NCBI GenBank assembly: GCA_002269645.1
Contig: NIVC01001111.1
Span: forward strand, 186,001-250,000
Length of the DNA stretch: 64,000 nucleotides
Origin: Macrostomum lignano
Taxonomy: Eukaryota
Reading direction: 5' to 3'
Part shown: one piece after another, positions 22,502 through 57,403 of the stretch
Numbering within the stretch: the stretch's first letter is position 1
Layout of the letters: each line of letters begins with the position of its first letter
Made by a program: the position numbers and the translations under genes
The notes under the pieces: generated by a model
What the model saw: the letters and a program-made list of their open reading frames with translations, nothing else
Told to the model about the DNA's origin: nothing
Database searches by the model: none

Positions 22502-22777
22502 CCGGCGCTGGCGACCCTATCCAGTGGCTTCGGCCGAATTTGGGTATGCGGGTCTGGCTCGCCAACCTGCAGGCCGTGGTACTGCTCAACGTACTCTCTA
22601 ATGCCTAAGGTGTTGACCGTGCCGATGGGCTGGAAGGCCGGGGAGTAGTCCGGTCGCAAGCGGTCCCCCTCCTGGTGTCGGGCCAGCCTTGAGGGTGTTA
22701 TTGGCCTACTGCCCGGTCAGGTGGAGCGGCCGGGTGGGTACCGCGCCCCTTTGAGGGTAGCCCACCAACCTTTTATC

Positions 22778-24298: not shown

Positions 24299-24321
24299 CC
24301 AGATATTGCATTTAATACAGT

Positions 24322-27300: not shown

Positions 27301-28062
27301 GCAGAGCTTCTCACCACTGGCGTTACTGGTAAGAACATCATTTTCCATTCGGACAGCCAAGCTGCCTTGCACGCCATCAGTGGCTGCAGCACCAACTCTG
27401 CTACAGTCCTTGACTGTATCAAACTCCTCAATGTGTTGGGTTCCGCCAACAAAATTACCCTTAAGTGGGTTCCGGGGCATGTGGGGATCCGAGGAAATGA
27501 GTTGGCTGACACCCTTGCAAAAGTTGGTGCCTCCGGCTCCTCTCTCGGCCCCGAACCTCTTGTCCCGATTCCTGGCTGTGTCATCGACTCGCGCATCAAA
27601 GCGTGGATCAGGACTCAGCACCGCTCGACTTGGGCGAACCGCACGAACTGCAGGCAATCCAGAGGCGCTGTCCCTCAGCCCTCTCACCAGCTCCGGAAGC
27701 TCCTCTTGCGCCTCTCGCGCAGAGACATCCGGGCTGCCACCATGACCCTCTCTGGTCACGGCTGCTTCTCCAGGCACCAGTACCTGCAGGGCAACGCCAC
27801 CAACGCCACCTGTAGTTTCTGCAACTCAGGTGACGAAACCGCTGAGCATTTCGTCAGCATCTGTCCCGCCTTCACGCGGGCCAGACTCACTTACCTCGGG
27901 CCACACACATCTATTACTGAAGCGTGCAAACCCGAAAACTTTAATCAGCTCATGCGCTACCTTCGGGCCACCCGCAGGGCTGAACTCTCCTTTCCAGAGA
28001 GCACCATAGCTGCTGGCGACACTGGGGGACATCCCTGGGCGGCGCCAACCCTCCGTCCATAG
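24322..28062 (+). CDS. LINE copy 1 ORF2 pol: APE endonuclease, reverse transcriptase, RNase H, CCHC finger (1246 aa, intact)
   Basis: APE motifs QEPW, GDLNAHH and SDH. RT motifs RPISL, FLDIVGAFD, PQGGVL and YADD. RNase H motifs YTDGSK, FQNEVLAI, HSDSQ and WVPGHVGIRGNELAD. C-terminal C-x2-C-x8-H-x4-C. Confidence 0.97.
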   Translation: MTKLHAAKGATFCLQINLQHCVSASVNLMKIAELYRPGLILIQEPWMRNGKLPNIPSGYSDFYVCGPGNSRPRAAILAASHLQAWLRTDLSDGDLCVIQSNHFSPRTCLVASVYIPGDRDPAPESLLRLAQYCESQNAELCLGGDLNAHHKHWGSKDTNTRGEELLALISNTNLMLCNRGSTPTFNNGRWTEVLDATLVTPRLFDRVKEWRVWSEEPSLSDHCFIAFNIADTKTQSPITWRRNIRNSDWAAYKAALDLHLQELTDLRPIETCEDVDHMAETLTGCIIAAYEAACPARAYRGKTSAPWWNPELGKLRRKAKSLHRRAMKTGNPEDMELFRQASRNFKSEVRKAKECKWRQFCNELDQDRPTSRLVKALTMDKMSKLAMIKKDDGSLTKDPEEVLQHMLSTFFPRVPTARPEPNHSMDGATLAAGIVTEDLIARAVRTFKPFKSPGPDGIYPVLLREAAKIPSFLRLTRNLMRASIQLGYVPKSWTEARVVFIPKPGKGDYQSVKAFRPISLTSAMLKLTERLILWRLLSCELTAMPLSNNQHAFRTGRSTDSALHAIVEKIERAVLGDGYALALFLDIVGAFDNVIFEAFQRALQNRKAHATLIRWIMYMISNRTVTAQLLGQTASTRVCKGGPQGGVLTPTLWNLVMDALLSDSRPDPVFKVGYADDVTAIVAGPSPSTLRDLMQSFIRKAESWANDNGLELSEPKTVAIMFTSRLRWNISPLQLYGRDIAFAHQTRCLGVTLDHRLNWSFHVKAKAKRASAILAQLRRALGTSWGLSPKRLWWIYTSVVRPAITYASVVWVSATQVKSHADLLNTIQGRACRLICNATRSTPFAGMGAFLNLPPLDLFIRGEAARTTRRLIDAGVKFIYMRAPAKRNLVPHSDLCLNFLNECQANRVFTDGIASTLNLRQRYSVAIDSRDNINDHWNPGELHCYTDGSKQSANTGFGVGIFLNGRVIATHAQYTGVNSSVFQNEVLAISSCTAELLTTGVTGKNIIFHSDSQAALHAISGCSTNSATVLDCIKLLNVLGSANKITLKWVPGHVGIRGNELADTLAKVGASGSSLGPEPLVPIPGCVIDSRIKAWIRTQHRSTWANRTNCRQSRGAVPQPSHQLRKLLLRLSRRDIRAATMTLSGHGCFSRHQYLQGNATNATCSFCNSGDETAEHFVSICPAFTRARLTYLGPHTSITEACKPENFNQLMRYLRATRRAELSFPESTIAAGDTGGHPWAAPTLRP

Positions 28063-28160
28063 CGACGCGTCGGCCGTTCAGGGACTAGCGGAATGGGCGC
28101 CCGCGCCTTCCCGCTGTGTCCCCTCCGGGACAGCCCTGCAGCTAAGTCAAGTAAGTCAAG

Positions 28161-29637
28161 ACCCGGTGACCCACTGTCTACCCGGTGACCCACTGTCTAC
28201 CTGGTGACCCACTGTCTACCCGGTGACCCACTGTCTAGCCGGTGACCCACTGTCTAGCCGGTGAACCACTGTCTAGCCGGTGACCCACTGTCTACCTGGT
28301 GACCCACTGTCTACCCGGTGACCCACTGTCTACCTGGTGATCCACTGTCTACCCGGTGACCCACTGTCTAGCCGGTGACCCACTGTCTACCTGGTGATCC
28401 ACTGTCTACCCGGTGACCCACTGTCTAGCCGGTGACCCACTGTCTACCTGGTGATCCACTGTCTACCCGGTGACCCACTGTCTAGCCGGTGACCCACTGT
28501 CTACCTGGTGATCCACTGTCTAGCCGGTGACCCACTGTCTAGCCGGTGACCCACTGTCTAGCCGGTGACCCACTGTCTAGCCGGTGCCCGGTGACCCACT
28601 GTCTAGCCGGTGACCCACTGTCTAGCCGGTACCCAGTGACCCACTGTCTAGCCGGTACCCAGTGACCCACTGTCTAGCCGGTGACCCACTGTCTAGCCGG
28701 TGTCTAGCCGGTGACCCACTGTCTACCTGGTGATCCACTGTCTACCCGGTGACCCACTGTCTAGCCGGTGCCCGGTGACCCACTGTCTAGCCGGTGACCC
28801 ACTGTCTAGCCGGTACCCAGTGACCCACTGTCTAGCCGGTACCCAGTGACCCACTGTCTAGCCGGTGACCCACTGTCTAGCCGGTGTCTAGCCGGTGACC
28901 CACTGTCTACCTGGTGATCCACTGTCTACCCGGTGACCCACTGTCTAGCCGGTGACCCACTGTCTAGCCGGTGCCCGGTGACCCACTGTCTAGCCGGTGA
29001 CCCACTGTCTAGCCGGTACCCAGTGACCCACTGTCTAGCCGGTGACCCACTGTCTAGCCGGTGTCTAGCCGGTGACCTACTGTCTACCTGGTGATCCACT
29101 GTCTACCCGGTGACCCACTGTCTAGCCGGTGACCCACTGTCTAGCCGGTGCCCGGTGACCCACTGTCTAGCCGGTGACCCACTGTCTAGCCGGTACCCAG
29201 TGACCCACTGTCTAGCCGGTGACCCACTGTCTAGCCGGTGTCTAGCCGGTGACCCCCTGTCTTGCCGGTGTCTAGCCGGTGACCCCCTGTCTAGCCGGTG
29301 TCTAGCCGGTGACCCCCTGTCTAGCCGGTGTCTAGCCGGTGACCCCCTGTCTAGCCGGTGTCTAGCCGGTGACCCCCTGTCTAGCCGGTGTCTAGCCGGT
29401 GACCCCCTGTCTAGCCGGTGTCTAGCTGGTGACCCCCTGTCTAGCCGGTGTCTAGCCGGTAACCCCCTGTCTTGCCGGTGTCTAGCCGGTGACCCCCTGT
29501 CTAGCCGGTGTCTAGCCGGTGACCCCTGTCTAGCCGGTGTCTAGCCGGTAACCCCCTGTCTAGCCGGTGTCTAGCCGGTGACCCCCTGTCTAGCCGGTGT
29601 CTAGCCGGTGACCCACTGTCTAGCCGGTGACCCACTC
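28161..29637. repeat. 19-bp minisatellite, right part, grading into 27/30-bp derivative units
   Basis: The same unit continues after the LINE. From ~29230 it becomes a regular 30-mer (GACCCCCTGTCTAGCCGGTGTCTAGCCGGT). Confidence 0.97.
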
Positions 29638-31727: not shown

Positions 31728-32956
31728 ATGAAGCCCGAAGCTCGGCAAGCCGCCCAGGCCGCCTTTCTATCGGAGGCGCTCGCTCTCCAGCCAGCCGACC
31801 GAGCCCGTCTCCTGTCCGAGTTGGACAGCAAAAGCTGCCGCGGCCGCCGTCCATTGCTGGCAAACTTCTGGACGATCCTGACGGTGATCGTAGTTGCACT
31901 GTACGCGGCCGCCATCGGCTTGGGCCACCTGCGGCCAGGTGGAACGTGTCTAATCTTCGCGGGAGAGTTCCTGTCTGACGCCGCTCGCTACCCAGCCAAC
32001 TGCGACCGGGTCTGCGCCGGCCTGACCGCCGTGCCAGTGGAGCCAGCCAATATCAGCCGGGCTCGATTCCGGGAGCTCTACGCTTACACCGGTCGGCCGG
32101 TGCTGGTGAAAGGCGCCGCCAGCGACTGGCCAGCCAAGCAGCACTGGAACCTGACATTCTTCCGGGACCTGTACGACCGCTACCCCGACTCCTACCGGAC
32201 CCAGAAGCGCCGGGCCCGCTACCTGCCATTCAGAATCGAGCTGCAGACGTTCTACGAGGCGCTGCACATGTCCGAGGAGCGACAGCAGCAGCCGTACTAT
32301 TTCGGCTGGAGCAATTTGGACAACAATGTGCACAACGAGTTGATGAAGTACTACACCTGGCCGCAGTACCTGCCGTTAGGTGTGCAGGGCTCCGTGCTCG
32401 ATTGGTTCTTCATTGGGGCGGCCGAGTTCGGGGCTCCGGTGCATGTGAGTTAGCGCTAAAACTGTTGACTTGCATCGGAACATTTTCTAACCAATAAACA
32501 CGAAATGTTGACTTTTTAAAAGCAGCAACCAATGCACTATATCTCTATTTAATCAAACGCAGCTCGACCACATTCTGCGACCCAGTTGGCAGGCCCTGAT
32601 CAAGGGTCGCAAGACTTGGGAGATTCAACCGCCTAGCGAGTGTTCCAGCGTCTGCCAGACCCTCCGAGTGCAGATGGAGCCCGGGGACATATGTAAGCCA
32701 GGCCCGAGAGCATTGATGAATGATATAAGAATTTTATAGAAGTTTTGTTCGTGAAATCTTGGATAAAACATGCGTGAAACACGTGTGAAACCATGCATAG
32801 CTGCATAATTGCGTCATATAATTTCTAACCTTTCCAAGCTAGCTAAATAAAAACTAACTAATCATTCCAGTCAACGTGGACACGAACCAGTGGTATCACG
32901 CTACCTTCAACGAGCCGGGTGTGTTCAGTCTCACTATTGGAGCCGAGTACGACTGA
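31728..32956 (+). CDS. Membrane-anchored JmjC/cupin-like 2-oxoglutarate oxygenase, 3 exons, 310 aa
   Basis: Exons 31728-32444, 32563-32692 and 32871-32956 have GT-AG boundaries and consistent phases (0,1). An N-terminal TM helix (FWTILTVIVVALYAAAIGL) precedes YAYTGRPVLVKGAASDW. The iron triad H-L-D ... WYH and the G-R-K-T-W strand are present, and the protein ends IGAEYD. Confidence 0.9.
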
Positions 32957-33392: not shown

Positions 33393-33914
33393 CACTGGTT
33401 CCTTATTCGGTGAGGCTCATTAAAACACTATTTTTAATTAGATACCCCTTCATTATTCAGTGAATGATCTGTTTTATTAAAGGTTCTATCGTGGGAAAAG
33501 AACAAAATAAGCGAACAAAACTGATTTGATTGCGCATTTCCGCTACAACAATTGATGTAGGGTAAAAGGGAAACAAAACAAAACGACTTTTATCTGTTCT
33601 AGGCACAATTATATAATATAGTAATTACCAATTTTTATTGAAAAAAGCGACAACACAATACTCCACAAGACAAATAACAATCTATTTAGCGCGATATTCT
33701 CTACACAAAAGTAAACTGAGTCAAAGGGTGGAGCCCGCACAACAAGGTGCGTCGCAAAACAAATGTTAAGAGGCAAAAAAGCAAAGACAAAAATAGGATA
33801 AGTGTATATAACTTGGTGTATATGTGTAGCAAAGCATACCCGGAGGAAAAAGATAACAGTACTTTGCGTACTTTAATTTGACTGAAATAGGGTGGAAGTT
33901 GATTTCACTTCTAC

Positions 33915-34340
33915 GGGTAGCGATTGGTGTTATCGGGGCTGGGCGTGGCCGTGTGTACATTAAGGTAGGAGTTGATGTTATCGGGGCTGGGCGTGGCCGT
34001 GTGTACATTGGGGTAGGAATTGATGTTATCGGGGCTGGGCGTGGCCGTGTGTACATTGGGGTAGCGATTGGTGTTTATCGGGGCTGGGCGTGGCCGTGTG
34101 TACATTGGGGTAGGAATTGATGTTATCGGGGCTGGGCGTGGCCGTGTGTACATTGGGGTAGCGATTGGTGTTATCGGGGCTGGGCGTGGCCGTGTGTACA
34201 TTGGGGTAGGAGTTGATGTTATCGGGGCTGGGCGTGGCCGTGTGTACATTGGGGTAGGAATTGATGTTATCGGGGCTGGGCGTGGCCGTGTGTACATTGG
34301 GGTAGGAATTGATGTTATCGGGGCTGGGCGTGGCCGTGTT
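33915..34340. repeat. 48-bp G-rich minisatellite, ~9 copies
   Basis: Unit contains TATCGGGGCTGGGCGTGGCCGTGTGTACATTGGGGTAG. The period is divisible by 3, which explains ORFs 33766-34385. Confidence 0.96.
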
Positions 34341-35016
34341 TACAGTACCGTATTAAACAGCCAAGGCATTTCAAGCAGCCAATAACCTAGCCGCAAAACC
34401 AAACAAAACTTTCCATCCGGATATGAATACACTCGTATATGAGCGTAATAAAGAAATAATCACAACTCGTAAACTCGCTTATGTTTTAACACAGACACAA
34501 GGAAGCAGAGAATAATTGACGAACAGAGATTGATAAATAGGAGAGACGATCTCCTGTGCAATAGACTTCATACACATTTAAATGAATGAATCGGCAGCAA
34601 GGGCTGTGCAACCATAACACCAACGCGCCCTGTGACCAGAAAGAAAATGAATGGTAGCCAAATAAAAATACTAACGATATCATGGAAAGAATATGCCACT
34701 GAAGTCGGAATATGAACTGGACTGTGCATTGCTTTGTTTTGGAATAGATAACAAAACATTTGGAAGTTTCACATTATAAGCAAGCAAGTAGACAATAATT
34801 ACAAAATTCATTACTCAATTATCAATGATAAATTGTTTACTGCAAATTTCAGGTACTCGTTTTTAGTATAATCAATAATCAATAATGCTAACACGAATGT
34901 CGTACGAGTAAAATAAGCCATTTCTATGCAGACGCTTACTGGAAAAGGGGGACTGTGTCTAGCAGCTGATTTCAAGCTCAATTACTGCCTGGGTCAGACA
35001 GGGACCCAGGCTGAGT

Positions 35017-35480: not shown

Positions 35481-38400
35481 TTACGCAGCCTCCTGGTGCA
35501 GCTCGGGAAACAGTCTGAGTAGAAGAGGGTCGACCAGAGTAAACAGCAGCTGCTTGTTGACCCTAGGATACTGCAGCAGGTCGTGCAGACGGCTCAACGT
35601 CGCCTCGGCAGAGTCCGCGCCAAGCGCTTGCGACACGTCTGAGTAAGGGTAAAAAGCAAGTAGTAAAATTTTTCATAAAATTGTTGTGATACATCAAAGT
35701 CACGATTTGAATTATGACATCCCCTATTCTGTTAATTGAAATCCTCATTCTGCCAATTGAAATCCCACTATGCTCATCAATATCCTCATTCGGAGGATTA
35801 CCAAATCAATCTTATGACCCTTAACGCTTCAAGTTTCAGAGCCACAATTTTCATGCGCGCAACAAATAAAGAACTGAGAGAGGACAACCACAATAAGGAG
35901 ACTCACACACGCTGGAGCAGGCAGTTTTCAGGGCTGCCAAAGCGTCGGCTCGTCGTTTCTGTTTGTCGCCGTCGCCGGGAGCGACGCGACGCTCCGGGAA
36001 GAAGATTAAATCTAGGGTGGCGCGCATTGGCAGTTTGAAATTCGATAAGCTACTACTTTAAACTACTATAATACTAGTATGAGTAGTCAAGTAGCAATAC
36101 GAGCTCGGGCTCACCCCTGAAGAGTTGCACAATGGGCACAGCCCTGTAGTCGCGAGTGAGTTCCAGCACCTTGGCGTTGATGAAATCGCGAATCAGTCGG
36201 TCAATCAGAGGACGCGCCAGCGGCCGGAGGCCCACAAGCAGGTGGCAGAGCCAGCGCCTCCACCAGGGGATGTCTTCGCTGCCGCCGCCGACGCTTGCAA
36301 AGACGACTCGCTCCAGCAGGAACAGGGCCAAGTCGTAGATGCCGAACACGCGGGGCACGGACACCGGGCAGGGGGCGGTCAGGCTGGGCGACTGGTCGGG
36401 TGATAGCGCCGCGTTGTTCCAGAATAGGTAATTGTGCAGCTGCAGCCGGATGGCGGTTTAGAGAGCGATTTTTATTGTGGGGTTGGAGGCGATTTTTATT
36501 GTGGGTTGGAGGCGATTTTTATTGTGGTTGGAGGCGATTTTTATTGTGGTTGGAGGCGATTTTTATTGTGGGGTTGGAGGCGATTTTTATTGTGGTTGGA
36601 GGCGATTTTTATTGTGGTTGGAGGCGATTTTTATTGTGGTTGGAGGCGATTTTTATTGTGGGGTTGGAGGCGATTTTTATTGTGGTTGGAGGCAATTTTT
36701 ATTGTGGGGTTGGAGGCGATTTTTATTGTGGGGTTGGAGGCGATTTTTATTGTGGTTGGAGGCAATTTTTATTGTGGGAGGAAGTGGAGGCTATTTTTTG
36801 GGGGGGGTTGGAGGCGATTTTTATTGTGGTTAGAGGCGATTTTTATTGTGGGGTTAAAGGCAATTTTTTTGTGGTTGGAGGCGATTTTTATTGTGGGGGA
36901 AGTGGAGAATTTTTATTGTGGGGGAAGTGGAGGATTTTTATTGGGGGGGGGGGGTTGGAGGCGATTTTTAATGAGGATCAGGGGTCGATTTTTTTAGAGG
37001 ATTGGAGGCGATTTTATTAGGAGTTGGAAGCGATTTTTATTGTGGTGTTGGAGTTTACTTTATTCGAGGGAGGTTTGGAGGTAATTTTTACTGGGTGTTA
37101 GGGCGATTTTTAATAGGTTTGGAAGCGATTTTCATTAGGATTATTGAGAAAGTTTCGATTCGGGTTTTCATGGCGGGTTTTGACATCGCATACGAGTAGT
37201 ACGAGAATAACAATCTGAGGTCAAATTGCAAACAAACAAGTTAACTGAGCAACTAACCCGACTCTGCTTGAGCGATTCGACGCCGCCGCCGCCGCCGCCG
37301 CCGCCGCCGCTAGTACCGCCGCGCGGCGCCAACGGCTCGGGCGTGGGCGCCTGAGTAGAAGCCAACAGACCGGGCAGGAAATCCTTAGCCAAAAAGAAGC
37401 CGCGCCGTTGAAACTTAGACGTGAGCCGGTTGAGACTGAGATCGGGCAGCAGGCTGGTCTCGAACTCCTGCAGCTGGTCGGACAGGAATAGGCGGAGCAG
37501 CTGAGACTGGCGCAGCAGCGGCTTGGCCAGCAGGGCGCGCAGGAAGCTCTCCAGCTCGGCCCGCTTCCCGGCTAGGAACTCCCTGCTTGAGCTGCCAATC
37601 AGCCGCTTCGACTGCAGCGGCAGGTCGCCGAGAGCGGCGCCGTGAAATTCACGAAGCTTCTCCTCCAGCACGTAGAATTCCGAATACTTTCTGTACACCT
37701 TCCAGCTGTCGCCGCCGTTCTCTGCCGGGCAGCTAACGTGGATGACGTATTTCATCACTCCGCTGGACAGCTGGCCGTCGTCGGCCGAATTCTCGCCGAG
37801 GCCGGTGACCGTCACGCGCCAGTTGGCCATGTCGCTTTGTCGACGCTGCTGCTGTTGTTGCTGCCGTTGACGAGAGCTGGCGGACAGAACCGAGGATGGC
37901 GGGCGGGTCAGCTGGTCGGCTAGAGAGGCGGCTTCCGGATACTCGGACGCGATGGTTGCCGGGTCGTTGCTAGGCAACATTGCCGCACCGCCAAGCGTAG
38001 AGTCCTCCAGTGCCTCCTCAGCTGGCAGCAAAGGAGGCAGCGACGAAGGGTGCTGGGCGGTGCGGACGGCCTGGCCGTCAACTATGGCCGACTGCTGCTG
38101 GCGGAAGAATCGAGACCGGCCTTGACGCTGCGGCGGCGCCAGGGAGCTGGCGAGTGTGAAAGAATAGACGATGGCTTTCAGCGGCTTGAACATACTGTTG
38201 GGCTGCTGATGAGAGACCGATCAGGAGGGTAGGTAGGGAGGCTACTGAGGGACCGATCAGGGGGTAGGGAGGCTACTGAGGGACTGATCAGGGGGTAGGT
38301 AGGGAGGCTACTGAGGGACTGATCAGGGGGTAGGGAGGCTACTGAGGGACTGATCAGGGGGTAGGGAGGCTACTGAGGGACTGATCAGGGGGTAGGGAGG

Positions 38401-41400
38401 CTACTGAGGGACTGATCAGGGGGTAGGGAGGCTACTGAGGGACTGATCAGGGGGGTAGGGAGGCTACTGAGGGACTGATCAGGGGGTAGGGAGGCTACTG
38501 AGGGACTGATCAGGGGGGTAGGGAGGCTACTGAGGGACTGGTTAGGGATGTGCAGTAATACAGACTTCGGATGGCACACAAAAACATAAATTTAAACAGG
38601 ATACGAGCTTACTAACAAAGAAACGAAAAAACCAGTTCAACGTAGGTACAAATCATTTGAATCGAGGTAGAACCAATTAAAATTATTGGTCCAATGAGGG
38701 ACTACCAGTCAGTTAAAGAAAAACACCATTTAAAAATTGTTGAGATAAGATATTAAATGCTGGACTAAAATACCTCAACAAAGGGTGTAAAAGAACGACA
38801 CCGCCTTACCAGCAGGACAAATACGGTACATGCAAACTGAGTAACTTGATTCAAGGCTAAAGCTGCAGTCTCCTCTCACCCAGCTGAGCCTTCATCATCC
38901 GACAGGGCGCTCTTGGCCGCCGCCTCTGCGGTGGCGGTAGCGGCCGCTTTGGTCCGCTCCCACCACCAGGATAGGGTGGATGCGGCGGCGGCGGCGGTTG
39001 CCATGGGGTTGCTATGCCTTTTATTTTATATCAATAGTTAATAGCATATTAATGAATAGGTTAATCAGTTATAAGGAGTGTTTTACAAAGACCACCTGCT
39101 ATTAAGAGTTAGAGGTTAGTCAGGGGGCTGTGTGCACCGCGGCGCACTTTAAGCGACATTGAGAGGCATTGCTGCCCATTCCGCCGACTCCCCTGAGCAG
39201 GCACACAAGCGCGCGGATACGTACGCAGTCATACGCACAGGCACACACTCACACAGGAGATTACAGCGGCCCTAACTTTATTTATCGTTAGGCATGTACA
39301 CTTCACTGTGTCATGGGGGTTGGCCCTCAATGGCGTTAATTGCACGAGCAGAGCCAAGCCGAAATTCCAATTTAACTCCAAATTAATGTGACTGCACTTG
39401 GAATCGAGCCTGGGCCGCTGGGACATCAGAGCGCCGCGCTAGACTACTAGGCTACGGCCGGCCCCTGCTATTAAGAGCAGCAAACACTTAAATAAGTTCA
39501 GAACTGGATTAATTTTCAATAAAGAGCTTAAAACTGAAAATTACCTGTCTCGCTAATTCGGCCTTCAAATATTTCAAAATTTGCTTCTGTTGAGTGCTGC
39601 GACAGTGACCCTTAACATTATATACTACATAGTAAAGCTTCACAACATTTAGATAATAAAAAATCAGGCTTCAGTACTACTAAAATATATATTATAAAAT
39701 CTCTAAGCTTAGCGCAAGTGGATAAAATATGAAATTTCGAGCTTTTAATAATCGCATTTGCATCACATTAAGTCGGCGCCTTGCTTACTTGGCTTTAGCC
39801 GAACCTTGACCGCTGTCCCTGGAGCCCGACTCCTCCAGCACAACCAGCTTCATGTAGCAGTCGCTATTGGCGAAGGCTGGCAGGTAGTGAGTCTCCAGAA
39901 AGTTGCACACCCGCTCGTGAGCTCTGCAATGGCGGGGAAAGAAGGATGTTTATATTTATATTATACGAGCGTAACTGTGTTGCAAGCCTCTTGCTTCACA
40001 ATGCTCGGGAATTGACCAACTGTGCTCATAGCTTGGCTTAACAGTGACCAGCTGTGCTCATAGCTGACCTTAGCAGTGACCAACTGTGCTCAAAGCTTGT
40101 CTTAACAGTGATCAACTGTGCTCATAGCTGACCTTAGCAGTGACCAACTGTGCTCAAAGCTTGTCTTAACAGTGATCAACTGTGCTCATAGCTGACCTTA
40201 GCAGTGACCAGCTGTGCTCATAGCTGACCTTAGCAGTGACCAACTGTGCTCAAAGCTTGTCTTAACAGTGACCAGCTGTGCTCATAGCTGACCTTAGCAG
40301 TGACCAACTGTGCTCAAAGCTTGCCTTAACAGTGATCAACTGTGCTCATAGCTGACCTTAGCAGTGACCAATTGTGCGTAAAGCTTGCCTTAACAGTGAC
40401 CAGCTGTGCTCAAAGCTGACCTTAACAGTGACCAACTGTGCTCATAGCTGACCTTAACAGTGATCAACTGTGATCATAGCTTGGCTTAACAGTGACCAGC
40501 TGTGCTCATAGCTTGCCTTAACAGTGACCAACTGTGCTCATAGCTGACCTTAACAGTGATCAACTGTGCTCATAGCTTGGCTTAACAGTGACCAGCTGTG
40601 CTCATAGCTTGCCTTAACAGTGACCAACTGTGCTCATAGCTGACCTTAACAGTGATCAACTGTGCTCATAGCTGACCTTAACAGTGTTCAACTGTGCTCA
40701 TAGCTTGCCTTAACAGTGACCAGCTGTGCTCATAGCTTGCCTTAACAGTGACCAACTGTGCTCATAGCTGACCTTAACAGTGATCAACTGTGCTCATAGC
40801 TGACCTTAACAGTGACCAACTGTGCTCATAGCTGACCTTAACAGTGACCAGCTGTGCTCATAGCTGGCTTTAACAGTGACCAACTGTGCTCATAGCTGGC
40901 TTTAACAGTGACCAACTGTTTTCATAGCTGGCTTTAACAGTGACCAACTGTTTTCATCGCTGGCCTTAACAGTGACCAACTGTGCTCATAGCTGGCTTTA
41001 ACAGTGACCAACTGTGCTCATAGCTGGCTTTAACAGTGACCAACTGTGCTCATAGCTGGCTTTAACAGTGACCAACTGTGCTCATATCTGGCTTTAACAG
41101 TGACCAACTGTGCTCATAGCTGGCTTTAACAGTGACCAACTGTTTTCATAGCTGGCTTTAACAGTGACCAACTGTTTTCATAGCTGGCCTTAACAGTGAC
41201 CAACTGTGCTCATAGCTGGCTTTAACAGTGACCAACTGTGCTCATAGCTGGCTTTAACAGTGACCAACTGTTCTCATAGCTGGCTTTAACAGTGACCAAC
41301 TGTTTTCATAGCTGGCTTTAACAGTGACCAACTGTGCTCATAGCTGGATTTAACAGTGACTAACTGTGCTCAAATTTGGCTTTAACAGTGACCAACTGTG

Positions 41401-44400
41401 CTCATAGCTGGCTTTAACAGTGACCAACTATTTTCATAGCTGGCTTTAACAGTGACCAACTGTGCTCATAGCTGGCTTTAACAGTGACCAACTGTGCTCA
41501 TAGCTGACCTTAACAGTGACCAACTGTGCTCATAGCTGACCTTAACAGTGGCCAACTTTTTCCAACTTAAATTAAGAAAAAAATCACTTTTCAAACTCAC
41601 ATGAACCAAGCTGAGCTAGTCCGAAGGTTGGGCACAGAACTGGCGCCATCTTTGACAACTGGATAATAAAATACAGGGTAAATTTATTACACCCCTAATT
41701 GAAGAAGAGAGCAGGTAAAAAGATAAAACCGGCTCACCATTTCGCAGGCAGTTCATAAACTCATCTGGAAGCTGCAGAGCCGCTATGATATCCTTGTTGT
41801 GATGCAGAAGCGACTCGTAGATTCGCTCAATGTCCGAGTAGATTCTCTGACAGGTGTTGTCGCGAATCTCAGCCGCCACCAGGTCTTTGTTGATCATCTC
41901 TGCGGAGAATGGCGATTCAATTGGAGAAGTTACAAGCCAAATCATTGAGCAAAGATTCTCCAGACTGAGGTAATTATCTAGCAATGTAAGAGGCGATTCC
42001 CCAGACTCATAGGGGATTCCCAGACTGAGAGGGGATTCCCCCGACTAAGAAGCGATTCCCTGATTAAGAGGGTATTCTCCAGACTGAGAGGATTCCCCCG
42101 ACTAAGAGGGGATTCCCAGACTGAGAGGATTCCCCAGACTAAGAAGTGATTCTCCAACTAAGAGGGGATTCCCCCGACTAAGAAGTGATTCTCCCAACTA
42201 AGAGGGGATTCCCCCGACTCAGAGGTGATTCTCCCAACTAAGAGGGATTCCCCCGACTAAGAAGTGATTCTCCAACTAAGAGGGGATTCCCCCGACTAAG
42301 AGGTGATTCTCCCAACTAAGAGGGGATTCCCCCGACTTAGAAGGGATTCCCCCGACTAAGAGGGGATTCCCGCAGACAGAGAGCTGATTCCCCAGCAGCG
42401 CAACAGGCGATTCCCAAACAGTGTGAAAGCAATTCCTTTGCGGTATAAGAATTCTCCAGTTTGAAAAGCGATTTACTAGTTTAACAGACAAAAAATGAAA
42501 AGGAGGTACAGAAGGCAAGCCAGCCGGCCCCTCACCCAGATCGCCGTAGAAAATCATCAGCTCCAGACTGTCGCACAATTTCATAAAATCGATGAAAGCC
42601 TGCCGAAGCCCGTGATGCTCGTACACGCTGCCAATATTGCTGGGAGGCTGCAGGCCCTGCTGCGGCTGCTGCTGCTGCTGTTGCCATTCGGCTTTGCTGG
42701 CAGCCATAGCCATCTCCGTGTACCGGTGCAGCACAGGCACCCTGGCGACTGGCTGGCCGCTCGGCTGCGGCAGCGGGAAATCGTCCAGCGCCTCCAGGAT
42801 CAACCGGTTGACGGTGTGCGGATTCGCTAGCGAGTCCAGCGCCGGCATCAGCACGGCGACGGTCAGGATCTCCGTTAGTAGCATCTCTAGGCTCCTGGGG
42901 ACGGTTCATTGGGTTTGTTGTGATGAGCTGTTGTGGGGATGTTGTTTGTTGTGGGGATACGGGATTCTGTAGGATTATGGGAAAATAGGATATGGGATTC
43001 TGTAGGATTATGGGAAAATAGGATATGGGATTTATAAGATTATTGGAAAATAGGATGTGGGATTCTGTAGGATTATGGGAAGCGGGGATATGGGATTCTG
43101 TAGGAATATGGGAAGCGGGGATATGGGATTCTGTAGGATTATGGGAAGCGGGTATATGGGATTCTGTAGGATTATGGGAAGCGGGGATATGGGATTCTGT
43201 AGGATTATGGGTAGCGGGGATATGGGATATTCTAGGATTATGGGAAAAGGGGTTATGGGATTCTGTTATAAAATGGGGTTATGGGATTCTGTTGGGAAAC
43301 GGGAATATGGGATTCTGTAGGATTATGGGAAGAAGAGATACGGGATTCTGTAGGATTATAAGGAGCGGGGATATGACTCTAGGATTATGGGAAGAGATAT
43401 GGGAACTGGGATCTCAAATCATAATTTTCAGCTGAAAGCGGGAAAACAGGGTTATTATTGAAATTGCTGACTGGGCTGGATATGTGAAACAATCAATGCT
43501 TACTTGGAGCCCTTGGCCGTGGGGTGAAGCAGATGCGGCAGTACCTTGGACACAAGGCCTTTCACATAGTCATATTCTGCGGTCCGATCCTTCATGGCCA
43601 CGTGCAGGTGGCCTCGCATGTTGCGCAGCATCAGCGACTCAAAGTTGGATGTGGAGCCCAGGTTGCCTGCGGATGGCGGGGTGCGGTGTCAGTCCTTGCC
43701 AGATCCAAATTGTCAAATTTCAAATTCGGGAACGGTTCCGGAGAATTTCGGGAACGGTTCCAGTGATTTTCGGGAACGGTTCCAGTGATTTTCGGGAACG
43801 GTTCCAGTGATTTTCGGGAACGGTTCCAGTGATTTTCGGGAACTGTTCCAATGATTTTCGGGAAAGGTTCCAGTGATTTTCGGGAACTGTTCCAATGATT
43901 TTCGGGAACGGTTCCACTCATTTTCGGGAACGGTTTCAGTGATTTTGGGAACGGTTCCAATGATTTTCGGGAACGGTTTCAGTGATTTTCGGGAACGGTT
44001 CCAATGATTTTCGGGAAAGGTTCCAATCATTTTCGGGAACGGTTCCAATGATTTTCGGGAATTGTTCCAATCATTTTCGGGAAAGGTTCCAATGATTTTC
44101 GGGAACGGTTCCAATTATTTTCGGGAAAGGTTCCAGTGATTTTCGGGAACGGTTCCAAAGATTTTCGGGAACGGTTCCAATGATTTTTGGGAACGGTTCC
44201 AATGATTTTCGGGAACGGTTCCAAAGATTTTCGGGAACGGTTCCAAAGATTTTCGGGAACGGTTCCAATGATTTTTGGGAACGGTTCCAAAGATTTTCGG
44301 GAACGGTTCCAATGATTTTCGGGAAAGGTTCCAGTGATTTTCGGGAACGGTTCCAATGATTTTCGGGAACGGTTCCAATGATTTTCGGGAACGGTTCCAG

Positions 44401-46844
44401 TGATTTTCGGGAACTGTTCCAATGATTTTCGGGAACGGTTCCACTCATTTTCGGGAACGGTTTCAGTGATTTTGGGAACGGTTCCAATGATTTTCGGGAA
44501 CGGTTTCAGTGATTTTCGGGAACGGTTCCAATGATTTTCGGGAAAGGTTCCAATCATTTTCGGGAACGGTTCCAATGATTTTCGGGAATTGTTCCAATCA
44601 TTTTCGGGAAAGGTTCCAATGATTTTCGGGAACGGTTCCAATTATTTTCGGGAAAGGTTCCAGTGATTTTCGGGAACGGTTCCAAAGATTTTCGGGAACG
44701 GTTCCAATGATTTTTGGGAACGGTTCCAATGATTTTCGGGAACGGTTCCAAAGATTTTCGGGAACGGTTCCAAAGATTTTCGGGAACGGTTCCAATGATT
44801 TTTGGGAACGGTTCCAAAGATTTTCGGGAACGGTTCCAATGATTTTCGGGAAAGGTTCCAGTGATTTTCGGGAACGGTTCCAATGATTTTCGGGAACGGT
44901 TCCAATGATTTTCGGGAACGGTTCCAGTGATTTTCGGGAACGGTTCCAGTGATTTTCGGGAACGGTTCCAGTGATTTTCGGGACGAGTCAGGAAGTTTTC
45001 CATAAAATTTTATGAAGACTCTCGGGCACTGACTCGTACTTGGAATTTTGAATTATTAATAGACAACAAACCTCTGCGAAGCACATCGTTGCACACCTGG
45101 TAGTGCGCCACGGCTCCCGGTATCACCTGGTCTTCAACAAACTGGCCGATATCGCACTGAAAATCAAGTGAATTTCTGAAATTTAAGACTCTTGAAAATG
45201 AAACATTATTATTGGTATAGCAATAAGTTTATTAAATCAACATACCCGAGAGCACCGATGCAGCAGTGCAGAGACGGCGTACTTCAGGTGCAAACGAACA
45301 TCATTTACGAAATCTTCGCGAGAGCTAATCTCTCTGGAACATTTTAAACAAGATTTATATAATATTTTACTTGTCAGTACACAGATACTAAAATAACTAG
45401 ATGGGCCACTCAGGCATATATGAGACACCACAAAAGGTGTTGGTCGATACTGACAGCAGGACGGTGGCCATGGAATACACTTAGTAAAACAGCTTTCTAC
45501 TTTCAGTTCAGTAGCAAAGAAGAATACATAAGCTATTTTATAAAAATAAAGCCAGCTGAAACGACTTTGATAAGTTTAGAAGCCCAAGCTTGCAGGCGTA
45601 AATAGCTTGCTAATTGGTTCAGCAATAATGTACATTGGCCAGTCCACTGAAATGTACATGGCAGCTTTAGGCTGGAATTCCGAGAAAGGCAATAAAGATT
45701 GGGGCGGGGCGAGGGGGGTAGTGTGGAAAGGCGCGGTTGAAGGGTTTAAGCTGTGGGTAAGAGCCAATAAATGAGCCTTGGCTTTAAAAATACATTAAAA
45801 TGCTTCTGTTTAACTTACTACTGAACTGAAAGTAGCTTGCACGCAAATGTGCTGAGTGGCCTATCTGGTTATTCTAGCATCTGTGGTTAGTACTCAGTTT
45901 GAAGGCTCAATACAATAATATTTAACTCACTTATACCAACAGAGAATGTATCTGTCTATCACGAGCTCAAAAAACTGTAAATGAAAAGATGTAATAAACA
46001 AATAATAAAGCTTCATTTGCTAGACTTTATGATACTTAATTGGGTGTGCAAGCTGAGTAAAACAGAGGCTGAACTCACCTCGAACAAAGCGTCGCTGACT
46101 GGCTCGTCAACAGTAAAGTTGATGTTCAAATAGGGCGGAAACGAGCTGGTCGATGCACTTCTGAAGTCAATCGAATAGTTACAGTAATAAAATACAAACT
46201 GCATCATTGTAAAGTACGAGGTAGAGTTCCATGTCCGTAGCTAATTAATTTCCCTTAAACTTCCAAAAGTATTAATAATAAACAATCCAATGGAAAGACT
46301 TCTTTTATTCTTTTACTATAATAAAGTGATGAAGTAAAGAATGACAGCAATAGTTTAACCTAACACTCATTAACATCTAATTTATTAATGGTACAAGAAA
46401 AATGGCTAGGATTGCATTTATCTTAACTTCAGCCCCCCACCACCCATCTACACAATGTGCCACATATAAAAAACATCTATATTCATAACTTCCCATAGCC
46501 ACATCTATTACAGTGGAACTCTATTGTAAAGCTGTTTTCATCATCAAATCTGCTTACTTACCTTGGCCTATAGCAGTTAGAATTTCCACAGACTGTGCAA
46601 TGTGGCTCTGCAGACCTGCTTACTGACTCACTTGATTCTGAGCTATTTTCTTCATAGCGAATCCAGTTTGTCTTACTAGAAATTGAATAGTTAAATAAAA
46701 ATTCAAAGATTTACTAAATTTATGTTTGAAAACAATGAAATACTTAAATGCAAAGTTACTCACTCAGTCAGATACCAAATGACTGCCAGGCCAATCAGAA
46801 ATGATGACACATAGAGTAGAAGATAGAGCAGAATTGAAAACATT
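35481..46844 (-). CDS. SNX14: Sorting nexin 14 (TM-PXA-RGS-PX-Nexin_C), 16 exons, ~990 aa; extreme 5' end uncertain
   Basis: Exons (minus strand): 46844-46764, 46675-46562, 46160-46079, 45974-45931, 45333-45246, 45156-45072, 43666-43504, 42894-42536, 41899-41738, 41658-41601, 39923-39789, 39011-38880, 38146-37258, 36439-36115, 36011-35907, 35638-35481. All introns are GT-AG with a fully consistent phase chain. Peptides CTVCGNSNC, LLTEILTVAVLMPALDSLANPHTVN, WKVYRKYSEFYVLEEKLREFHG and NKQLLFTLVDPLLLRLFPEL match SNX14. Confidence 0.93.
36464..37135. repeat. 22/24-bp minisatellite (GAGGCGATTTTTATTGTGG[GG]TTG)n, degenerating rightwards, SNX14 intron
   Basis: Visible unit starting ~25 nt from the acceptor at 36440. 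Confidence 0.93.
38212..38541. repeat. 31-bp G-rich minisatellite (GAGGGACTGATCAGGGGGTAGGGAGGCTACT)n, SNX14 intron
   Basis: Visible 31-bp period, ~10 copies. Confidence 0.95.
39109..39463 (-). mobile_element. tRNA-derived SINE (355 bp) with a LINE-like 3' end
   Basis: Perfect 14-bp TSD CCTGCTATTAAGAG (39095-39108, 39464-39477). On the minus strand the A box TAGCCTAGTAG (39454-44) and B box GGCTCGATTCC (39410-00) are 33 nt apart. The 3' region CAGGGG..GCGGAATGGGC..GCC..CCCCCTG-CTAA matches the LINE 3' UTRs. Confidence 0.88.
40014..41552. repeat. 32-bp minisatellite (AACAGTGACCAACTGTGCTCATAGCTGGCTTT)n, ~48 copies, SNX14 intron
   Basis: Visible 32-bp period with spatially clustered variants. 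Confidence 0.97.
41993..42372. repeat. ~19-21-bp degenerate minisatellite (GATTCCCCCGACTAAGAGG)n, SNX14 intron
   Basis: Recurrent GATTC..GACTAAGA core. Confidence 0.9.
42960..43390. repeat. 33-bp minisatellite (GGGATTCTGTAGGATTATGGGAAGCGGGGATAT)n, SNX14 intron
   Basis: Visible period, producing the 11-aa repeat in the spurious ORF 43025-43435. Confidence 0.94.
43726..44982. repeat. 22-bp minisatellite (GGGAACGGTTCCAATGATTTTC)n, ~57 copies, with a ~527-bp internal duplication
   Basis: Visible 22-bp period. The same variant series recurs 527 bp apart (ORF starts 44114/44641, 43960/44487, 43917/44444). Confidence 0.97.
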
Positions 46845-49551: not shown

Positions 49552-52500
49552 ATGTACCAAGAAATTGACGCCGCCAGTGCCGACGCACAGCATGTTGGCC
49601 GGTTGACGCGGCTGCGCGAATCCAAAGGCCTAGTCGTGGCCGTGGTCACCCTGCTGCTCATGCTAGACGTGATGCTCATCACTGTGCTTGAGCCGCTGCT
49701 GCCGGCAATGCTATTTGAACTCGACCAGCTGCAACAAGGTGGCATCACTTGGTCGGCCTGGCTATCGAGTCTGTTCCGCTGCGGCGGCGGCGGCGTCAGC
49801 AGCATCGGCTACTTTTCTAACAGTTCCAATGACCAGCTCGATGGAAGCAGCGAGCGCCAGCTGTACGCAAAGTACGCCCCACAGATTGGTCTCGTGCTTG
49901 GTCTGAAGCCGGGCGTTGAGGTTATCGGTAACCTGCTAGTCGGGCCGCTGGTAGATCGAGTTGGGCACAAGGCGCCACTTCTGATTGGCTCCGGGCTGTA
50001 CTTGGTGCGTGTAATGCCCTTTGTTCTTTTTTATGCAGTATGCAACTGTAAATAGAAGGATTTCAAGGTTACAAGATTACTATAGTCAGCATAGATTTAA
50101 GGGTTAAAAGAAGCGAAGTTTCAGCAGTTCAACAACAAACCAGATAGCGTAGGGCAGGGGTCGGCAAACTCGGGCCCGCGGGCCATATGCGGCCCACCAA
50201 GCCTCTCTATCCGTCCTTCGGACTTTTGAAACTTCACAATAACAATACGGCCCCGCTCAAGGTTTATGTCTCTTCTCAGCTCTCCTCTCTAATCTCCTCT
50301 CCCTTCTCTCCTCTCTTTTCCCTCCCTTCTCTCTCCCTTCTCTTTTGCCTCTGTGACGATAGCCGTTTGCTTAACGCTTTTTGATATAAAATGACAGATT
50401 CAAACAAAAGAAAAGTTATAAGATTTTCCAAACAATTATTATAAATCATAATCATTTTTACGGTCTCTTTCCATACCCAAGTATTGAATATTTCAGCATA
50501 GGGCATAAATTGTACTTTCATCAGAAGCCAACAACGTAAATTACTCATCGTAAATAAGTGACCAACCCGTCTCACCATGCAGGTAACGGCTGGCATGTTC
50601 GGCTTCAGTCCCAACTATCCAATTCTTCTGATCGCCCGCCTGCTGCAGGCCGCCTCCTCCAGCTTGTCCACCGTGGCCGGCCTCGCCCTGCTGGCTGCCA
50701 CCTTCGCCGGCGACGAAGTCGAACGAGCGAAAGCGGCCGCCGTGGCTTTTGGCGGCCTTAGCTTCGGCCTCATCATGGGCTTCCCGTTCGGCGCCGTCCT
50801 GGCGCAGTGGTTCGGCAGAGCCAGCCCGTTCCTGGTGCTCGGCGGCCTCTCCCTGCTAGACATGGCGCTTCGGCTGGCAGTCCGAACGCCTGCGGACTCC
50901 GCCTCTCATGCCAGGAGGGACCGCGGCAACAAAGACAACAGGGAAAAAGACAACGAAGAGGAGGAGAAAAAAGCCAAGCGGAGAGAGTCTACTTCGGCGT
51001 CTTTGAAAGAGATCGGGTAAACTCGACGCTGTTTCTGTCCGTAAAACACTGGAAGGATTGCTCGCTTCTTTCCGATCGCCATTGCTATAAAATCAAAAGA
51101 CGTTTAATGTTGATTTAACTTTAAATTTAGAGCGATTTTATCGGTTGAAACAGAAGTGGCTCTACAGCTACTTGACTCAAACAGTGATCTCCTTTTTTCC
51201 AAGTACTCGCCGATCACTTAGTGACAAGTGACAAAACTCGCTAGAGTCATTGGAAACAATTCACTAGTTGGCGACTCATATGATACGCTCATAACTCAAC
51301 AGTCGCCAATCCGTCGCATTACAGTTTTTTGAGCTGTAAAAAAGTCTATAAAGTCAAGTGAATTGTAGAGTCGTCCAAGAGACGTCGTGTTAGCGCTTAA
51401 CTTTCTACTAACTCAAGTAGAATATATAGAATAATACGAAATGGGGTTCTACGAGCGCAATTCATGGTGGCGTTCTGCAGTAAATAGTATTATCATTCAA
51501 CTGCATTAATAATACTTATTCAATTATCCCTAAATAAGGGCAATTAATATATAACTACCTCATTTATTGTTTTAAAAAAACGAATTTTCAACTGAGTAAT
51601 TAAAGACAAAAGCATTGAAATACTTTCTTTTTCTTAATTAAATTATAGCTTTGTTGTTATAAATATGGACAAAAAATTGTAACACCGGGAGACTTCTATG
51701 GTTTAAACAAAAAGCTCCATATCCTCGCAAAAGAAGCTGTCGCAAGTGCGCCAGTTTCTTAATTATATTCTTTGGACATCTGGCAATTAAAAATGCCAAC
51801 TGTTGCAATGTACAGCTCTGAAAAAGTCGAGTGTCGCAAGCAAAATAAAAAATTCGACCTGTTTTTTAAGTTTTAAGTCCTCTGCTAACCGAACCATTGA
51901 ACTTCCAGATGTGAGAATTTGTCCTTGGTTACAGAACTTGAGGGACTATTAGAATCAGCAACTGTCGCAAGAATTGCCCAAATTTAAAAATTCCTATGCC
52001 CCAAAAACAAGCAATCCGCACGCTATCCGCACACGTAACCAATTTTTAACGCCACCCCACAGACAAGCCCAGTACTTGGAATGCTCTGAACCCTCTGTTG
52101 CATAAATAAAGTGTCTAAATCTTTGCAAAATATTCAGGTTTTTAGCTGTCGCAAACATTTAAAAAAATTTTATGAGGATGGTATGCGGCCAGATTTACGG
52201 GAGTGCGCTCTAGACGCAACTCAGTGATTGTACAGCAACTCGAGAATGACTCATATATGACTCTCTGCTCGTACGGCCCCAGAGTCGTTATAGTCGCAGA
52301 CAAAAAACGCCTCAAATTGACTCTTAGGCGACTTCTTGGCGACTTGTACCGTGACATCGTTAGTGTCATTTCTTTCCTATTTTACCTGTGTTGCCAGCAA
52401 CGACTGAAGCAGCTCTGGGGCAATGCAACTGACTCTGGTACCGTTTTCATTGGGTCACACCCACCGACCTATTGCAGAGCCACTCCAGTGGGAGCTCGCA

Positions 52501-53741
52501 CCTTGTGGCGCCTCGCCACCAACAGGTACGTCGGCACCATCCTGATGGCCGACTTCCTCATCCACTTCGGACTTGGCGCGGTGTTCACCACGGCGCCCAG
52601 CTTTATGCAGGACACTCTGGCCGGCTCGCTCTGGCAGATGGCTGTGGTGGCGCTGGCCTCCACCTGCCTGCAGTTCGGGGTGCAGTACGCCTGCTCCGGC
52701 TGGCTGGCAGCCAGGCCGCTCGCGAGATGGCGCGTCCTGTTTCCCAGCCTGGTTGTATTCGGCATCGGCATGCTGCTGTACCCGGTCGTTGGCGCCACCC
52801 GCAGCATCTGGTTTGCTGCTCTGCCCGAATCAGTGAGAAACTTGAGGATTTGCAGTTCTTCTCAGTAGTAACCAGCTCCCCTCAGTAGTAACCAGCTCCC
52901 CTCAGTAGTTACCAGCTCTCCTCAGTAGCTACCAGCTCTCCTCAGTAGCTACCAGCTCTTCTCAGTAGTTACCAGCTCTCCTCAGTAGCTACCAGCTCTC
53001 CTCAGTAGTAACCAGCTGCCCTCAGTAGTTACTAGCTGCCCTCAGTAGTTACCAGCTCTTCTCAGTAGTTACTAGCTCTTCTCTGTAGTTACCAGCTGTC
53101 CTCAGTAGATTTTTTTCACAAAAACATTGTCAGGTACTCCGCATCGCCCTGGCTCTGTTCACCTGCACGTGTTTTCCCTCGTTAAACTACCTGGCTGACC
53201 GACTGTTCACAGCCGAGTACGGAGCCGTGAACGGTCTGTACACCGGTGCTTTCAACCTGGGCATGTTCTGCGGCAGTCAGTACGCGGGCCTCCTGCTGGG
53301 CTGGCTGGGCTTCGAAGTCTTGTACAGCGCCTTCGCCATGGTGCTGCTGGCTTCAGCCGCGATTGGACTGGTGAGAAACTCAGATTGGTAGCACTGCGGA
53401 CATTGGAATTCGGGTATTGGGATTCGGGTATTGGGATTCGGGTATTGGGATTGAGGTATTGGGATTCGGGTATTGGGATTGAGGTATTGGGATTGGGGCA
53501 TTGGGATTGGGGTATTGGGATTGGGGTATTGGGATTGAGGTATTGGGATTTGGGCACTACGAATCAGACATTGGGATTCGGGTATTGGGATTCGAAGAGG
53601 CATCAAATGCCTTGCTCCCATCGCCTGCAGGTGCACCGCAGTCTCACTGATGACAGAGCGGCGATGTCAGCATCAGACCATGGCGGACGGGACCACCTCA
53701 CCATTCTCGGCCACTCCTCAGCCAGCGGCACAGTTGTTTGA
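49552..53741 (+). CDS. Divergent SLC18-family (VMAT/VAChT-like) MFS transporter, 5 exons, 529 aa
   Basis: Exons 49552-50004, 50583-51016, 52478-52832, 53134-53370 and 53631-53741 are GT-AG with consistent phases. Motifs LLMLDVMLITV, QIGLVLGLK, LVGPLVDRVG, YPILLIARLLQ, DEVERAKA..GGLSFGL..PFG and YLAD..YGAV align with VMAT TM1-TM12. Confidence 0.9.
50155..50345 (+). mobile_element. Partial hAT-type MITE (left TIR CAGGGGTCGGCAAAC), same family as 19536-19749
   Basis: Left terminus plus the internal block shared with the 19.5-kb copy. The right TIR was not found. Confidence 0.65.
52861..53108. repeat. 20-bp minisatellite (CTCAGTAGTTACCAGCTCTC)n filling SLC18 intron 3
   Basis: Visible 20-bp period, ~12 copies. 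Confidence 0.96.
53404..53592. repeat. 14-bp (2x7) G-run minisatellite (GGGATTCGGGTATT)n filling SLC18 intron 4
   Basis: GGG occurs every 7 nt over ~190 bp. Confidence 0.96.
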
Positions 53742-56931: not shown

Positions 56932-57177
56932 GCACGCGAAGGTGTATTCAGCACGCCAGTGAAGTATGAGACAGACCAGGCCTAAGGGCTACGGTCTGCG
57001 ATGCTTCACGCCTGCCCCTATATTCAGCAGGTCAAGGCTGGAGAGGGAGGTCTGCACCCGCTATTTGCCACTGGCAGCCGCAGACCCCCCCCCTCACGCT
57101 GTTTCACAAGTCGACCCAGGGTACTCGTCCCCGCGTGTGTTCAAGGCAGACCCTAGGGCTGCTGGACAGACTGGGCT
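56932..57177 (+). ncRNA. Predicted HDV-like ribozyme at the 5' end of LINE copy 2
   Basis: P1 56932-38/57132-38, P3 57119-21/57129-31, L3 TACTCGT, P1.1 GT 57139-40, candidate catalytic C 57167. The core is identical to copy 1 except for one P4 base. Confidence 0.8.
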
Positions 57178-57403
57178 CCGACGCTGGCGACCCATCCAGT
57201 GGCTTCGGCCGAATTTGGGTATGCGGGTCTGGCTTGCCAGCCTGCAGGCCGTGGTACTGCTTAACGTACCCCCTAATGCCTAAGGTGTTTGACCGTGCCG
57301 ATGGGCTGGAAGGCCGGGGGGTTGTCCGGTCGCTAGCGGTCCTTTTCTTTTTCTTCTTTCCTCTTTCTTTTGTGACTCAGCTCACTCCTTCCCGCTTTCA
57401 GCT

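Follow-up and report, generated by a model that had tools for sequence, protein, structure and literature searches.

A genuine SINE copy of Macrostomum lignano with a 3′ end structurally compatible with a conserved Y-shaped module of I-superfamily LINEs

It is textbook knowledge that short interspersed elements (SINEs) can share their 3′ ends with long interspersed elements (LINEs), and LINE partners from the I superfamily are already on record. In the eel pair UnaSINE1/UnaL2, a conserved 3′ stem-loop followed by a short tandem-repeat tail is the recognition signal of the reverse transcriptase (RT), and it is this signal that the SINE has copied. LINEs of the LOA clade (Loa, Lian, Bilbo, and Baggins) have two open reading frames (ORFs), the second of which, ORF2, carries an apurinic-type endonuclease (APE), an RT, and an RNase H. 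This set of ORF2 domains is not specific to LOA, being found also in I, Nimb, Ingi, and Tad1 elements. Described SINEs with partners in the I superfamily are Gecko with MosquI (PMC3747384, in which the tail repeats of UnaL2 are also cited) and the Meta- and V-SINEs with Nimb (PMC11481361). In this study, we analyzed 64,000 nucleotides (nt) of the flatworm Macrostomum lignano (assembly GCA_002269645.1, contig NIVC01001111.1, positions 186,001 to 250,000; hereafter the window), in which an earlier note had proposed that a 355-nt element is a tRNA-derived SINE whose 3′ end mimics that of LOA LINEs present in the same stretch. We show that the element is a genuine SINE copy, that the resident LINEs carry a 3′ module that is real and clade-wide, and that the last 80 nt of the SINE are able to form every helix of this module. 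The link between SINE and LINE is moderately supported. Our reading is that this true SINE probably owes both the origin and the function of its 3′ end to the module of the LINE clade, and that its partner is likely to be a sister family of the resident LINEs.

The SINE and its parts are located in the window as follows.

39109-39463, minus strand: SINE copy of 355 nt, consisting of head, body, 3′ module, and tail, bounded by the duplication
39464-39477: upstream copy of the target-site duplication, reading CTCTTAATAGCAGG on the minus strand and repeated directly and exactly over 14 nt
39095-39108: downstream copy of the target-site duplication, an exact 14-nt match to the upstream copy
39444-39454, minus strand: A-box-like TAGCCTAGTAG, fitting TRGYNNANNNG, of an RNA polymerase III (pol III) internal promoter
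39401-39411, minus strand: B-box-like GGCTCGATTCC, one mismatch to GGTTCGANNCC
39198-39400, minus strand: SINE body, no Rfam match
39121-39197, minus strand: Y-shaped 3′ module, from the minimum-free-energy fold and covariance-model alignments
39174-39184, minus strand: 11-mer GCGGAATGGGC, identical in both LINE copies and in the related LINE L001
39109-39120, minus strand: short tail ACTAACCTCTAA, sharing only CTAA with the LINE tail CTAAGTCAAGTAAGTCAAG

On the minus strand the element reads GGCCGGCCGTAGCCTAGTAG...CTCAGGGGAGTCGGCGGAATGGGCAGCAATGCC...CGCCGCGGTGCACACAGCCCCCTGACTAACCTCTAA, and everything that had been quoted of it, including the perfect 14-bp target-site duplication, is present. 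It is short, lying inside the range of 75–662 nt given by SINEBase (PMC3531059); it is non-coding, with stop codons interrupting all six frames; and its sense strand is free of TTTT, the internal pol III terminator. No second copy was found by similarity search in the 64-kb window, and the stop-free translations of the element had zero matches in a collection of 5.8 billion proteins. The body resembles nothing in the rest of the window or in the LINE loci that we fetched, and when the complete SINE was used as a BLAST query on the window and on every LINE locus, random 11–13-mers were the only matches.

The head of the element is a pol III promoter of the tRNA type. Its A box begins 9 nt inside the upstream copy of the duplication and its B box lies 43 nt past the start of the A box; if the T of the A box is numbered as tRNA position 8, the B box occupies the canonical positions 52–62. 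The composite pattern TRGYNNANNNG-N28-40-GGNTCRANNCC, searched on both strands with block-shuffled windows as control, has a single match in the window, for which the shuffled windows lead one to expect 0.03. It is on the promoter boxes that the description "tRNA-derived" is based: ARAGORN at its default threshold reported no tRNA in the head, Rfam gave no tRNA match at the gathering threshold or, over 801 nt, at E ≤ 10, and the head is not recognisable as a tRNA by sequence or by cloverleaf. Because the boxes are present and both programs were negative, we speak of a tRNA-type promoter only, descent from a tRNA not being demonstrated. A tRNA-Ala called by ARAGORN at an 80% threshold was set aside as dubious; the call takes in bases of the duplication. 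Separately, positions 39428–39438 of the head (CGCGGCGCTCT, sense) are complementary at 10 of 11 positions to 39138–39148 (AGTGCGCCGCG), which is extra sequence within the 3′ module; the complementarity may reflect pairing over a distance, the way in which the insertion came about, or chance.

The two resident LINEs with which the SINE is compared are the following.

22258-28160, plus strand: LINE copy 1, a full-length element whose ORFs are intact; ORF1 at 22721-24298 and ORF2 (APE-RT-RNase H) at 24322-28062
28077-28141 and 28142-28160, plus strand: 3′ module and tail of LINE copy 1
22251-22257 and 28161-28167: target-site duplication of LINE copy 1, ACCCGGT (7 bp)
56932-62688, plus strand: LINE copy 2, of a different subfamily; ORF2 in two overlapping frames near 61.8-62.1 kb
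62607-62668 and 62669-62688, plus strand: 3′ module and tail of LINE copy 2
56921-56931 and 62689-62699: target-site duplication of LINE copy 2, ACTAGATTCGG (11–12 bp)

Both copies have the 3′ motif CAGGG(A/G)CTAGCGGAATGGGC-N6/7-GCC..CCGC..CCCTGCAGCTAAGTCAAGTAAGTCAA(A)G, and conservation of this motif was followed in relatives fetched from public assemblies (L001–L004) together with 80 metagenomic loci whose ORF2 is 28–40% identical. One relative, L001 (57% ORF2 identity), has CAGGGGTTAGCGGAATGGGCG..CCGCTG..CCCTGCAGCTAAGTCAAAG just ahead of its tail, L002–L004 (43%) have variants of the module with compensatory changes, and many of the 80 metagenomic loci follow the pattern GGGG-NN-GCGCATTGGGCC-loop-GGCC-TCA-GCGC-hairpin-CCCC, after which come diverse microsatellite tails. 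Folds of single sequences gave one architecture, in which a closing helix, P1, surrounds an arm (P2, an AAU internal loop, and P3) and a variable hairpin, P4; the module persists in relatives down to about 33–37% ORF2 identity. Alignments of the module made with MAFFT mis-registered P1 and P3 between subgroups, and model-guided alignments (A5 and A8) were therefore used instead. A covariance model, R2, built from A5 and thus only from sequences outside the window, recovers the two LINE ends of the window at 53.7 and 51.2 bits. In 13 aligned LINE ends, 98.2% of the positions that should pair do so and five pairs have changed on both sides, against 40–57% pairing in slid controls, though the count leans towards structure because the alignment was fitted to the model. 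The covariation that the earlier note had wished to see checked is present as far as the LINEs are concerned, and the module may be regarded as a candidate RT recognition element of the clade.

The module was located at 28077–28141 and 62607–62668 in the window and in L001–L005, L009, L010, L013, L015, L016, and L018, with further occurrences in the 3′ untranslated regions (UTRs) of L025, L026, L076, L079, L080, and L083. The clade spans 28–57% ORF2 identity and includes many environmental samples; its consensus has P1 as GGGG/CCCC, P2 as GCRC/GYGC, an AWU internal loop, P3 as GGCC/GGCC, and a variable P4. Directly 3′ of the module stand lineage-specific tails (GGTAA, GAAGA, CAAT, AAT, GAA, or poly(A)). 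L001 has the same tail, TAAGTCAAG, as the resident LINEs, and L003 has a variant of it. The 3′ UTR of L064 (32% identity; about 5548–5660) ends in (CCTAA)n, and tails of the CTAAC/CCTAA type, like the ACTAACCTCTAA of the SINE, therefore exist within the LINE clade.

The SINE shares with both LINE 3′ UTRs the CAGGGG, the exact 11-mer GCGGAATGGGC, and the closing CCCCTG, so that the 11-mer, closing stem, and CTAA reported in the earlier note are all in place. In the window, the 11-mer has three exact occurrences (28088 and 62618 on the plus strand and 39174–39184 on the minus strand), and in the SINE as in the LINEs it spans the 5′ strand of P2, the internal loop, and the 5′ strand of P3. The minimum-free-energy fold of the SINE has the Y shape of the LINEs, with topology [[][]], and the two thus have the same 3′ secondary structure. 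In the SINE, P1 is CAGGGG/CCCCTG; P2 is GCGG/UCGC in the covariance-model alignment or CGGCG/UGUCG in the minimum-free-energy fold; the internal loop is (G)AAU; P3 is GGGCA/UGCCU with a GCAA loop; and P4 is GUGCGC/GUGCAC. The innermost pair of P3 is A-U in the SINE and G-C in the LINEs.

These likenesses were evaluated in several ways. Local alignments between the 3′-terminal 100 nt of the SINE and those of each LINE, run under five scoring schemes against 3000 dinucleotide shuffles, beat about 99% of the shuffles (z about 3; 5–57 of 3000 as high; p about 0.01), the best alignment covering 29 columns. By tree-edit distance to the LINE folds, shuffles as close as the SINE numbered 2 of 2000 for copy 1, 18 of 2000 for copy 2, and 1 of 2000 for L009. 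As decoys we took 141 unrelated bacterial and viral sequences that contain CAGGGG-N2-6-GCGGAATGGGC by chance, collected from scans of bacterial and archaeal genomes and viral contigs; CCCTG stood at the right distance in nine, and three (about 2%) came as close in fold to LINE copy 1 as the SINE does. The covariance-model alignments cover 39118–39197 with all model pairs formed, and when the search with R2 was confined to 136 nt, the SINE was aligned end to end with 13 of 13 model pairs (8.4 bits, E = 0.04). In addition, the LINE duplications of 7 and 11–12 bp are of the same kind as the 14-bp duplication of the SINE.

Several observations weigh against kinship of the two 3′ ends and lend substance to a competing explanation, which we consider doubtful but serious, namely that a genuine SINE has acquired its G/C-rich stem and 11-mer by chance and is moved by an unrelated or unseen LINE or through relaxed recognition. 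Searched over the whole window, a covariance model trained on LINE ends, R1, gives the SINE 11.6 bits (E = 2.1), level with noise; noise matches elsewhere reach 17 bits, and LINE ends on which R1 was not trained (33–44% ORF2 identity) score 17–28 bits. Likewise, the SINE is not among the five window-wide matches of R2 at E ≤ 10, the weakest of which has 10.4 bits. Aligning the SINE to the module takes three insertions (2, 5, and 14 nt), and the identity, about 58% across 59 model columns, falls below the 72–95% over 35–61 bp of accepted SINE/LINE partnerships (PMC11481361); clear sequence identity is thus not seen. The tails differ as well, the SINE having ACTAACCTCTAA and the LINEs (TAAGTCAAG)2, with CTAA alone in common. 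The 11-mer by itself is not special, as matches of that length are common in larger searches. When P1 is held fixed, the structural comparison weakens to 8–196 of 2000 shuffles as close as the SINE, and 988 of 2000 such shuffles give the coarse topology. The motif is known from a single SINE copy, and all tests of resemblance were made post hoc, after the likeness had been noticed. On the other hand, pure coincidence sits poorly with the targeted alignment test, with the small fraction of motif-matched decoys that fold as closely to copy 1, with the formation of every model pair, and with the location of the match exactly at the 3′ end of the SINE, abutting the tail as it does in the LINEs. 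The claim of 3′-end mimicry therefore survives in part: the structure is compatible and nearly all shuffles are beaten, but the identity is low and the covariance scores are at the level of noise.

If the resemblance is one of descent, possible donors would be the LINE families of the window itself, either copy 1 with its intact ORF1 and ORF2 or the family of copy 2. In favor of this is the presence of SINE and LINEs in one genome and the restriction of the exact 11-mer to the sub-lineage of the two copies and L001, more distant LINEs having GCGCATTGGGCC; yet the tail conserved in L001 and, in variant form, in L003 is absent from the SINE, and the three insertions, modest identity, and low covariance scores point the same way, so that we consider these families unlikely partners. 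The match is weak and rests on a single copy, and mobilisation by the resident LINEs is accordingly hinted at by the sequence rather than proven. The earlier note had itself cautioned that, with tails that differ, the SINE may in truth be paired with a sister LINE, and it is this version that the evidence favors. A single insertion by LINE machinery, whether of a retrocopied transcript (from pol III or otherwise) or of a chimeric retropseudogene, would agree with one copy in 64 kb, with the lack of translated copies in the protein collection, and with a head that has no recognisable tRNA cloverleaf. We judge it quite improbable, given that head, body, LINE-like 3′ end, and short tail follow the standard layout of a SINE and that one copy per 64 kb is expected where all SINEs make up 0.39% of the genome (PMC5730564, Supplementary Table 4). 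That the sequence was never mobile, its 14-bp repeat and promoter-like boxes being accidents of intronic DNA in a window full of repeats, is scarcely conceivable: the 14-mer lies outside all tandem arrays, the A/B composite is far rarer in shuffled windows and sits just inside the upstream repeat copy, and a G+C-rich unit of 355 nt interrupts A+T-rich flanks.

Under the reading that we prefer, a true SINE with a 3′ end descended from the LINE clade, we infer that the element is transcribed, that its 3′ end is homologous to the LINE module, and that it is mobilised in trans. Transcription by pol III would begin at the two internal boxes, A and B, within the degenerate tRNA-like head and run through the 355-nt unit, which has no run of four T. 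At its 3′ end, about 80 nt of the RNA would fold into a Y-shaped three-way junction, in which the G/C closing helix P1 surrounds the P2-AAU-P3 arm and the P4 hairpin, copying the architecture of the LINE-clade 3′ UTR and, on the 5′ strand, also its sequence (CAGGGG...GCGGAAUGGGC). The ORF2 protein of the clade may then bind the module in trans, nick the target, and prime reverse transcription at the short tail, and reverse transcription at the nicked target would leave the 14-bp duplication. Most likely, the 3′ end would have been donated, and the SINE mobilised, by a sister family of the two window copies, because the tail ACTAACCTCTAA and the three module insertions of the SINE differ from the window LINEs.

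The resident LINEs belong to the I superfamily and have the APE-RT-RNase H layout, with which LOA, Nimb, and I clade are equally compatible. Both ORF2s contain the Pfam domains Exo_endo_phos, RVT_1, and RNase_H and a C-terminal CCHC motif; no CCHC knuckle was found in ORF1. Against UniRef proteins of M. lignano, ORF2 is 43–76% identical over 24–37% of the query, and against metaclust entries 95–96% identical over 12–13%. Read from the sequence itself, a host in M. lignano or a close relative is probable on the strength of these ORF2 matches; a search with a host-gene exon gave no hits, and an exact look-up of ORF2 found no entry. The two copies are of different lineages, with 60% amino-acid identity in ORF2; over the final 89 nt, the nucleotide identity is 86.5%. 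Their 5′ UTRs (22258–22666 and 56932–57342) are 93% identical over about 410 nt, the identity stopping about 60 nt before ORF1; since this contrasts with the 60% identity of ORF2, it suggests that LINE lineages have recently swapped their 5′ UTR (promoter) module, and a comparable exchange is reported for the 5′ ends of Nimb in molluscs (PMC4758252). In copy 2, the ORF2 frames at 58866–62117 and 61835–62575 overlap (region 61694–62575), which implies a frameshift, and the copy is probably inactive. Copy 1 lies within a 19-mer tandem array (22007–22258 with 28161–29629) and copy 2 within a 21-mer array (54680–56935 with 62692–62839), which may reflect either a target preference or mere abundance of arrays, of which the window has 38 rows in Tandem Repeats Finder. 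Such crowding is in line with the repeat content of the M. lignano genome, of which tandem repeats make up 13%, LINEs 1.66%, and SINEs 0.39% (PMC5730564, Supplementary Table 4).

The SINE most likely lies, in sense orientation, inside an intron of a PXA/PX sorting-nexin gene, because ORFs with these domains stand on either side of it on the minus strand: a 341-amino-acid ORF with a PX domain at 37168–38193 and, at 42276–42884, the end of a PXA domain that falls under the curated Pfam cut-off. Other exons of host genes are found at 6735–7469 (minus), 31728–32453 (plus), and 52203–52868 (plus), and their domains include an ArfGAP (E = 2.7e-17) and weak Cupin_8 and MFS_1 matches under the Pfam cut-offs. 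The long ORFs at 33911–34385, 36295–37020, and 43025–45003 run through 48-mer, 22-mer, and 22–33-mer arrays and encode repetitive peptides; they are open-repeat artefacts and not genes.

With regard to novelty, our literature search found no named Macrostomum SINE and no LOA-partnered SINE in the library that it covered, which is not proof of absence. A new SINE/LINE pair, as had been proposed, would not be new as a kind of partnership, since SINEs with LINE partners in the I superfamily are already known. Tentatively, the element could stand for a SINE family that is the first to be characterised in a macrostomid flatworm, and its 3′ end a diverged copy of a previously undescribed, clade-wide Y-shaped module; on the same tentative reading, that module is conserved with covariation in RNase H-bearing I-superfamily LINEs of flatworms, insects, and environmental eukaryotes. 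If this is true, stringent 3′ recognition in the I superfamily could be studied on a defined RNA element and on a SINE that mimics it naturally, in an animal with working transgenesis. It would also give Macrostomum, a regenerating flatworm in which SINEs have so far been annotated in bulk, a named SINE/LINE system. The by-product may be of more interest than the pair itself, namely a conserved three-way-junction RNA with compensatory changes at the 3′ ends of a LINE clade. There is also a caution in these results, as a striking 11-mer with a matching stem can sit below the detection limit of a covariance model, and partner assignment calls for a SINE consensus and a complete census of LINEs.

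Among known systems, Gecko/MosquI of Aedes aegypti is alike in its tRNA-type head, in a 3′ end related to an RNase H-bearing LINE of the I superfamily, and in short repeat tails other than poly(A), with stringent 3′ recognition inferred (PMC3747384). It differs in that Gecko is a multi-copy element of an insect with clear 3′ identity, whereas the M. lignano element is known from one copy with about 58%. The MetaSINEs and V-SINEs of bivalves, which have Nimb tails (PMC11481361; PMC4758252), share with our case spiralian hosts, tails from I-superfamily LINEs, and a mosaic exchange of modules, and a LINE 5′-UTR segment is common to otherwise unlike LINE families there, much as copies 1 and 2 have 5′ UTRs of 93% identity; their 3′ matches, however, are based on consensus sequences and extend over 35–61 bp at 72–95% identity. 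UnaSINE1/UnaL2 may serve as the mechanistic model for what we propose in M. lignano, although it involves the L2 clade without RNase H and a single stem-loop instead of a three-way junction, and has been shown experimentally, in contrast to our case, which is known from its sequence. As for the resident LINEs, they are like those of the LOA clade in having two ORFs and an APE-RT-RNase H ORF2, and differ in an ORF1 without a CCHC knuckle.

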